From: Malacoraja senta
Taxonomy: Eukaryota
Reading direction: 5' to 3'
Length of the DNA stretch: 64,000 bases
Assembly: GCA_038087875.1 (NCBI GenBank)
Contig: CM075988.1
Location: forward strand, 24,986,001 to 25,050,000
Of this stretch, positions 37,516 through 37,658 are shown in pieces. The position numbers and the translations under genes are program-made. The notes under the pieces were generated by a model, which did not search any database, was not told where the DNA came from, and saw nothing but the letters and a program-made list of their open reading frames with translations. Every line of letters begins with the position of its first letter. Position 1 is the first letter of the stretch.

Positions 37516-37658
37516 CTCTTCTTCTTCTTGCGTATGGCGTGCACAGCCTAAAGTTGTCGGACAACTTGTTCTATTTGATCTTATTTGATTGTGCACGCCG
37601 GGTTGATTGCATTCGTCGAAACAGGGCAGACCACGTGAAGGTTGCAATCTCCCACCCC
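37516..37658 (-). mobile_element. Short non-autonomous retroposon: 5' HDV-like ribozyme + 3' stem-loop + (AAG)n tail
   Basis: TSD AGTGGAAAGAC at 37505-37515 and 37659-37669 (12 bp if the shared C is counted). (CTT)n at 37518-37529 is the (AAG)n tail on the - strand. It interrupts an older LINE-tail fragment. Confidence 0.88.
37605..37658 (-). ncRNA. Minimal HDV-like (CPEB3-like) self-cleaving ribozyme
   Basis: GGGGUGG-GA-GAUUGCA-ACC-UUCACGU-GGU-CUGCCCU-G-U-UUCG-A-CGAA-UGCAAUC. P1 is 7 bp with a G1.U wobble, P2 is a perfect 7 bp, P3 is 3 bp, L3 is UUCACGU, and J4/2 is CGAA with the catalytic C at 37615. Confidence 0.88.

Follow-up and report, generated by a model that had tools for sequence, protein, structure and literature searches.

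We identified a 143-nt retroposon on the minus strand (37658 down to 37516) of the window, the whole 64,000-nt stretch of Malacoraja senta DNA that was analysed. This element probably derives from an APE-type LINE, as a bipartite, non-autonomous form without an ORF, and has a 54-nt head that is predicted to cleave itself. The evidence consists of its anatomy and target-site duplication, its insertion into an older repeat, a ribozyme fold far beyond chance, a family of high copy number that ends uniformly at G1 (the first base of the element, at 37658), RNA 5′ ends at the same base, and an excess of sense RNA. Cleavage, the dependence on read-through transcription, and the identity of the partner LINE are inferred.

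A short retroposon inserted into an older repeat

Read along the minus strand, the locus has the order GTCTTTCCACT, then GGGGTGGGAGATTGCAACCTTCACGTGGTCTGCCCTGTTTCGACGAATGCAATC ... CAAGAAGAAGAAGAG, then GTCTTTCCACT again, and the target-site duplication is perfect (11/11 bp, 37659-37669 versus 37505-37515). The parts of the locus are listed below, with n positions counted from G1.

37441..37515, resuming at 37659-37692, minus strand: 3′ part of an older repeat with a (TAAAC)n tail, which hosts the insertion (from contigs and reads)
37659..37669, minus strand: 5′ copy of the target-site duplication (GTCTTTCCACT on the minus strand), identical to 37505-37515
37605..37658, minus strand: minimal HDV-like (CPEB3-type) ribozyme head, 54 nt, with predicted cleavage 5′ of G1, between 37659 and 37658 (from the fold, the comparison with CPEB3, and family RNA 5′ ends at 37658)
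37530..37604, minus strand: 3′ domain, a 10-bp closing stem (n60-69 with n114-123) around a 7-bp hairpin (n92-98 with n102-108) (from folding)
37516..37529, minus strand: (AAG)n-type tail AAGAAGAAGAAGAG, with variable tail ends and random flanks at 37517-37520
37505..37515, minus strand: 3′ copy of the target-site duplication, identical to the 5′ copy

The older repeat allowed us to verify these borders. Its consensus continues beyond 37515 as TATACATGATTACAATCAAGCC, which matches window positions 37670-37691 at 18 of 22 bases, and its contigs and reads carry a single copy of the duplicated 11-mer. Since the older repeat thus runs uninterrupted, it serves as the equivalent of an empty site and fixes the borders of the retroposon to the base. 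The retroposon is a real insertion into this repeat, which is as abundant as the ribozyme element itself (summed depth of 1-2.5 million).

The 3′ domain folds at -23.0 kcal/mol (z = -3.58), a value equalled by one of 200 shuffles, and we presume that it is the recognition module for the reverse transcriptase of the partner LINE, a function that is inferred. With its target-site duplication, its microsatellite tail, and no ORF, the retroposon has the anatomy of a bipartite ORF-less LINE, and a match of its two ends to those of an autonomous LINE of the same genome is presumed. No further copies of it were found inside the 64-kb window.

A classical SINE, defined by a head derived from tRNA, 7SL, 5S, or snRNA and an internal Pol III promoter, was considered and rejected, as the retroposon does not meet this definition. 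ARAGORN detected no tRNA at the retroposon, no tRNA, 7SL, or 5S similarity was evident, and no Rfam family matched the region. The best candidate for an A box has three mismatches and is unconvincing; a degenerate B box gave a single one-mismatch match, about the chance expectation; and runs of four or more T are absent from the retroposon.

Upstream of the insertion, on the plus strand, lies a conserved miRNA cluster, composed of a mir-10-family (mir-100-like) hairpin (35554-35624) and a let-7 hairpin (36829-36905). Since the retroposon, 611 bp downstream of let-7, is encoded on the other strand, its excision from the miRNA primary transcript is not expected. Five stretches of N, together 1,084 bases, also occur in the window (6494-6624, 10237-10436, 31567-31784, 56528-56706, and 60066-60421).

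The head fits the fold of a minimal HDV-like ribozyme

Written as minus-strand DNA, the head is GGGGTGG GA GATTGCA ACC TTCACGT GGT CTGCCCT GT TTCGA CGAA TGCAATC. Its segments, all on the minus strand and given as RNA, are as follows.

37652..37658, minus strand: P1 5′ strand GGGGUGG (n1-7), pairing 7/7 with 37623-37629
37650-37651, minus strand: J1/2, GA
37643..37649, minus strand: P2 5′ strand GAUUGCA (n10-16), 7/7 Watson-Crick with 37605-37611
37630..37642, minus strand: P3 ACC, L3 UUCACGU, and P3′ GGU (n17-29), with L3 identical to that of CPEB3
37623..37629, minus strand: P1 3′ strand CUGCCCU (n30-36), pairing with the P1 5′ strand
37616..37622, minus strand: J1/4 GU (P1.1 partners G37 and U38), followed by a 5-nt linker UUCGA instead of P4
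37612..37615, minus strand: J4/2 CGAA, identical to that of CPEB3, with the predicted catalytic cytosine C44 at 37615
37605..37611, minus strand: P2 3′ strand UGCAAUC (n48-54), pairing with the P2 5′ strand

All three helices are complete. P1 (n1-7 with n30-36) is paired at 7/7 positions, including the wobbles G1.U36, U5.G32, and G6.U31; P2 (n10-16 with n48-54) is Watson-Crick at 7/7; and P3 (n17-19 with n27-29) is paired at 3/3. The L3 loop holds a U20.G25 pair as well as C22, the P1.1 donor. The head thereby displays these structural features of the HDV-like class: a 7-bp P1 that starts from G1.U, a P2, a 3-bp P3, a possible P1.1 pair (C22-G37), C44 as the first base of J4/2, and the U20.G25 pair in L3.

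To estimate how often such a fold arises by chance, we used a permissive HDV-like descriptor (G1.U, 7-bp P1, P2 of at least 5 bp, 3-bp P3, any L3, and J4/2 of the form C.AA). Its sole match on both strands of the window was at 37658 on the minus strand. Block-shuffled windows yielded 0.075 start sites per 128 kb, or about 6e-7 for one fixed position. The HDV-like fold of the head is thus far beyond chance.

Other measures were less favorable. The Rfam HDV-like and CPEB3 models gave no match to the head even at E values up to 10; these models cannot encode the pseudoknot, and the head also lacks P4. P1.1 is weak, amounting to one C-G pair and a U.U, as in CPEB3. In the minimum-free-energy fold of the whole element, G2-U5 pair with n56-59 in competition with P1, and this whole-element fold is not unusually stable (z = -1.27).

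The core matches that of the CPEB3 ribozyme

We compared the head segment by segment with the mammalian CPEB3 ribozyme (Rfam RF00622), using the published sequence from the supplement of PMC8233481. The two have equal lengths of P1, J1/2, P2, P3, L3, P3′, P1′, J1/4, J4/2, and P2′ (7/2/7/3/7/3/7/2/-/4/7). The L3 loop UUCACGU, J1/4 GU, and J4/2 CGAA are identical at 13/13 positions. The helices comprise 17 pairs, of which 7 are shared unchanged, 10 differ on both sides, and none is broken. Both ribozymes share G1.U36 and the next three G-C pairs, and both share the weak P1.1 (C-G plus U.U). The sole architectural difference is that CPEB3 has an 18-nt P4 hairpin where the skate head has the 5-nt linker. 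The genomic settings differ as well: the CPEB3 ribozyme is a single copy in an intron of mammalian CPEB3, whereas the skate head belongs to a retroposon dispersed in a fish genome in about 10^5 copies.

Membership in RF00622 was tried as a formal assignment and fails, with no match at E up to 10 against a gathering threshold of 35 bits. A CPEB3-intron locus was likewise not met; the skate element is dispersed, and the studied copy adjoins the let-7/mir-100 cluster.

These results bear on the possibility that the HDV-like fold is a chance resemblance within an ordinary short retroposon. The absence of an Rfam match and the unremarkable whole-element fold (z = -1.27) would be compatible with it. 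Against it stand the probability of the fold at one fixed position (about 6e-7), the identity with CPEB3 at 13/13 core positions with all helices compensated, the family RNAs that end at the predicted site, and the presence of the same architecture at the heads of LINEs elsewhere, the last two described below. We regard this explanation as highly unlikely.

Most of what had been proposed from sequence alone was confirmed at this level. That sequence-only reading had described an element of about 143 nt with an 11-bp target-site duplication, an (AAG)n tail, a ribozyme fold with C44 at 37615, and no tRNA, 7SL, or 5S head, and all of these held (the last by ARAGORN and Rfam). It had also likened the UUCACGU loop and CGAA junction to those of CPEB3, and this match held against the published sequence. 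Its suggested comparison with the Rfam HDV-like and CPEB3 models gave no match to the head.

Family members begin at G1

We examined the wider family in contigs from four DNA runs, bearing four organism labels, aligned to 37440-37740. Each run contributed 22,000-29,000 matching contig pieces. Summed depth across the element reached 2-5 million, compared with 27.6 and 43.4 in the single-copy flank where this flank was present, which places the copy number of the family roughly at 10^5, by a crude depth-based measure. All sampled 31-mers of the element were present in runs under eight organism labels.

The 5′ end of the family is uniform and lies exactly at G1. Depth falls by more than 98% past this base (between 37649-37659 and 37660-37670), and the loose ends at 37658 continue randomly (agreement of 0.33), so the family consensus stops there. 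The 5′ part of the element retains 73-100% of the depth of the 3′ part, indicating that few copies are 5′-truncated. Such scarcity of 5′ truncation is not usual when LINEs drive retroposition, and it is consistent with a template beginning at G1. The sequence-only reading had placed the start of the element exactly at G1, and for the family this held in contig depth and loose ends.

Variation in the head is limited. Variants of at least 5% are confined to CpG sites (n24/25, 31/32, 41/42, and 44/45). At n31, most of the family carries C (37628 A>G in about 84-93% of depth), and so the G6.U31 wobble of the studied copy represents a CpG transition of a G-C pair. C44-to-U accounts for 2-5.5% of DNA depth, among the lowest of the CpG sites, and the catalytic C and L3 are near-invariant; elsewhere, subfamily and CpG variants reach 20-50%. 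Within-family covariation could not be assessed, since head variation consists only of CpG decay and the variants are unphased. We also observed a subfamily (…TAATGCAATCAACTCGACGTGCACAAACGG, with variants in 37582-37601) whose J4/2 is CUAA rather than CGAA and which is over-represented in sense versus antisense RNAs in run X22.

RNAs of the family begin at the predicted cleavage site

We inspected raw reads over the same stretch from three RNA runs (X22, X37, and X38) under one organism label. In the single-cell run X22, 1,407 reads abut 37658 and carry a 31-nt extension. The extension consensus, CCCATTCACTCTGCGTTGATACCACTGCTT, is the exact reverse complement of a Drop-seq-type template-switch oligo (PMC9332140). 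Given an extension agreement of 0.81, about three quarters of these reads, or some 1,000, are joined to the oligo directly at G1. The bulk oligo-dT runs X37 and X38 show the Smart-seq oligo (PMC13234734) at the identical base. Seven consecutive G lie at the junction, the oligo contributing three and the element four; strand invasion at the GGG of the element would give only four, which argues against strand invasion. The consensus junction also lacks the additional G that is frequently seen with capped RNAs. In X22, 254 read-through loose ends were counted at 37659.

These RNAs are predominantly sense. Sense-strand reads exceed antisense reads 3-8 times, and in X22 the depth over the element is 1466-2553 in sense versus 311-550 in antisense. 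The older repeat served as an internal control and is strand-unbiased in RNA (185-210 versus 198-233). Poly(T) precedes 37528 in another 321 reads, reflecting priming or adenylation in the tail. Sense and antisense pools differ in their variants (37583 A>C in 17% versus 2%), so only some of the copies give rise to the sense RNAs. Taken together, the reads show that a discrete sense RNA, about 130-143 nt long and beginning at the predicted cleavage site, exists in vivo. This is shown for the family and not for the studied locus, since there was no RNA depth in the unique flank of that locus. Template-switch reads record RNA 5′ ends of every kind and do not distinguish a cleaved 5′-OH from a transcription start or cap.

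This last point leaves room for a promoter explanation, in which the head serves as an internal promoter, instead of or besides being a ribozyme, and a polymerase initiates from it at G1, as in L1Tc Pr77, with the ribozyme fold being secondary or a relic. In its favor, the template-switch reads cannot separate 5′-OH from cap, the L1Tc head is both promoter and ribozyme (PMC3383444), and the sense RNA pool comes from a subset of copies. Against it, the element shows no tRNA, 7SL, or 5S similarity, its A box has three mismatches and its B box is at chance level, and the consensus junction lacks the extra G often given by capped RNAs. Moreover, a promoter leaves unexplained why the core letters are identical to those of a proven ribozyme and why the helices are compensated. 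We consider this explanation unlikely; in the absence of a cleavage assay, we infer that the G1 ends arise by self-cleavage rather than initiation and that the element lacks its own promoter.

Alternatively, the head could be an inactive remnant, with the uniform 5′ end being merely the 5′ end of one master transcript that was copied many times. Cleavage has not been measured, P4 is absent, P1.1 is weak, and there is no within-family covariation, all of which leave this explanation available. However, about 1,000 RNA reads end exactly at G1, the sense excess of 3-8 times is present-day, P4-less HDV-like ribozymes are known to be active (PMC10879173), and the catalytic C and L3 are near-invariant while variants reach 20-50% at other CpG sites. 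We therefore judge an inactive remnant very improbable and retain self-cleavage as the preferred reading.

Related ribozymes head APE-type LINEs

We looked for relatives elsewhere with a core pattern derived from the head (GGGG .. TTCACGT N6 CCCTGT .. CGAA). In metagenome contigs, it matched at least 120 loci. P3 was Watson-Crick in 63 of 151 core matches, against a chance expectation of 1/64.

The most informative of these relatives, family A, carries a 72-nt ribozyme (GGGGAGG AA GACAGAT GCC, L3, GGC CCTCCCT GT, P4, CUAA ATCTGTC) with the segment lengths of the skate head. It lies at the exact 5′ end of a repeat, as seen from at least 12 different upstream flanks, and is followed downstream by Exo_endo_phos_2 and RVT_1 domains, that is, an APE plus RT LINE. 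Family A has internally deleted derivatives of 335 nt (L009:13122-13456, minus strand) and 558 nt (L063:8215-8772, minus strand). Both end alike (...CAAACGAAAGAAGAAG) with a tail of the kind found in the skate retroposon, and the terminal sequence of the deleted derivatives is ...GAAAGAAGAAG. The L009 derivative lies directly after a truncated copy of the family A ribozyme.

Family B shows a G-C to C-G swap in P1. Between lineages (CPEB3, family A, and family B), all helices are compensated, with the caveat that the metagenome families were fetched with a pattern derived from the head. As a separate observation, families B and C (L015, L033, L037, and L008) have P3 ACC/GGU as in the skate head, together with a long junction (CGAAAC...) between P4 and P2′.

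A protein search with the family A reverse transcriptase, independent of the DNA pattern, recovered two full-length contigs, L151 and L152. Each element is about 3.3 kb long, with a single ORF of about 1,000 aa encoding APE and RT domains, a very short 3′ UTR, and a (GA)n tail. Related ribozymes lie in their 5′ UTRs (L151:106-192 and L152:~120-200, both plus strand), with the L3 variants UUCACGAC and UUCGCGU; no clean P1 pairing was obtained for L152. The nearest named relative comes from a teleost. Among ribozyme models, only Rfam CPEB3 touched the LINE heads, at 25.2 bits (E = 0.007) and 20.6 bits, below its gathering score of 35.

In viral contigs, the exact CPEB3-type core yielded 30 matches, none with the full fold; the link between the skate head and theta ribozymes is thus one of architecture and not of sequence. 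No partner LINE or reverse-transcriptase ORF was found in the 64-kb window, and the protein search brought up only relatives in other organisms. The relatives are compatible with RTE or Vingi, and the clade of the partner is only inferred, remaining undecided without reference sequences.

These observations also invite a bolder reading, in which the CPEB3 ribozyme would be the domesticated 5′ head of a ribozyme-headed, APE-type LINE lineage (RTE- or Vingi-like), and the skate family would carry the same ribozyme cut down to 54 nt and active in vivo in about 10^5 copies. The human genome contains Vingi and RTE fossils (PMC5753468), so a LINE origin of the CPEB3 ribozyme stays possible. On balance we lean slightly against this reading. 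If it were true, the skate head would be the smallest natural eukaryotic HDV-like ribozyme.

A proposed mode of amplification

We propose that a copy of the element would be transcribed within a longer host or read-through RNA. The head would then fold as a minimal, P4-less ribozyme of the CPEB3 type and cut just 5′ of G1, giving the exact 5′ end of the element. The reverse transcriptase of a related LINE would use the structured 3′ domain and the (AAG)n tail in trans, by target-primed reverse transcription. With a template that starts at G1, every new copy would carry a complete ribozyme.

The remaining claims of the earlier reading fared as follows. Its proposal that a promoter-less element excises itself from read-through transcripts is supported indirectly by the RNA ends at G1, with cleavage and the absence of a promoter still inferred. 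The RTE- or Ingi/Vingi-type partner that it suggested is consistent in kind with the relatives found, which are ribozyme-headed APE plus RT LINEs with deleted derivatives and (AAG)n-type tails, and the clade is again an inference. The P1/P2 covariation that it had offered as a check was not seen within the family, where only CpG decay occurs; compensated changes were seen between lineages.

If the scheme is correct, a vertebrate genome would carry a working HDV-like ribozyme at about 10^5 places, and host transcripts would thereby contain an extensive natural collection of sites that cleave themselves. Minimal ribozymes without P4, which have hitherto been associated with phages and metagenomes, would also be present in animals. 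With a core identical to that of CPEB3, and with P4-bearing intermediates at the 5′ ends of LINEs, it becomes possible to test where the CPEB3 ribozyme came from, a question that is tied to how the HDV ribozyme arose. Ribozyme cleavage sites can be mapped in vivo from public template-switch RNA libraries, and the mutated genomic copies offer a ready-made mutational scan.

Comparison with known systems

P4-less HDV-like ribozymes cleave in vitro and are known from metagenomes and gut phages; the same study searched eukaryotic genomes and found none (PMC10879173). These minimal and theta ribozymes share with the skate head a double-pseudoknot core without P4. Their context differs: theta ribozymes occur in phages, often beside a tRNA with the cleavage site at the tRNA 3′ end, whereas the skate head resides in an animal genome with no tRNA.

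Ribozyme-headed LINEs are known from RTE, Baggins, R2, R4, LOA, and L1Tc/Ingi (Ruminski 2011, as cited in PMC6765202 and PMC5786205). LINEs without a promoter rely on HDV-like ribozymes at their 5′ end for release from co-transcripts, and non-autonomous elements exploit this release (PMC6765202). The likeness to the skate element lies in the 5′-terminal ribozyme and in promoter-less transcription inside host RNAs, the latter inferred for the skate element, and the relatives that we found are likewise single-ORF APE plus RT LINEs. Unlike the skate ribozyme, the ribozymes of these clades have P4 and head autonomous elements.

The closest design is that of the bipartite ORF-less non-autonomous LINEs defined by Kojima 2018 (PMC5786205), which are known only from RTE, Ingi, Vingi, and R2; Vingi is absent from the clades listed there as ribozyme-bearing. 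Non-autonomous examples with HDV-like ribozymes include the R2 SIDEs (PMC3414825) and NARTc (PMC3185411). R2 SIDEs, NARTc/RIME, and the deletion derivatives of Vingi and RTE resemble the skate element in consisting of LINE-type 5′ and 3′ ends only, without an ORF. In such elements an HDV-like ribozyme defines the 5′ end and frees the RNA from the co-transcript, and the skate element would likewise be mobilised in trans. It differs from them in being much shorter, at 143 nt, in its minimal ribozyme, its very high copy number, and its vertebrate host, and its insertion sites are dispersed, unlike those of R2 SIDEs.

The literature that we searched, which did not extend to Dfam or Repbase, contained nothing linking HDV-like ribozymes with cartilaginous fish or with Vingi. 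The design itself is already known, and within that literature its P4-less, CPEB3-type vertebrate form appears to be undescribed. The novel aspect is that several features occur together: a vertebrate host, a very high copy number, a minimal ribozyme without P4, a core identical to that of CPEB3, and read-level evidence of RNAs that start at G1.
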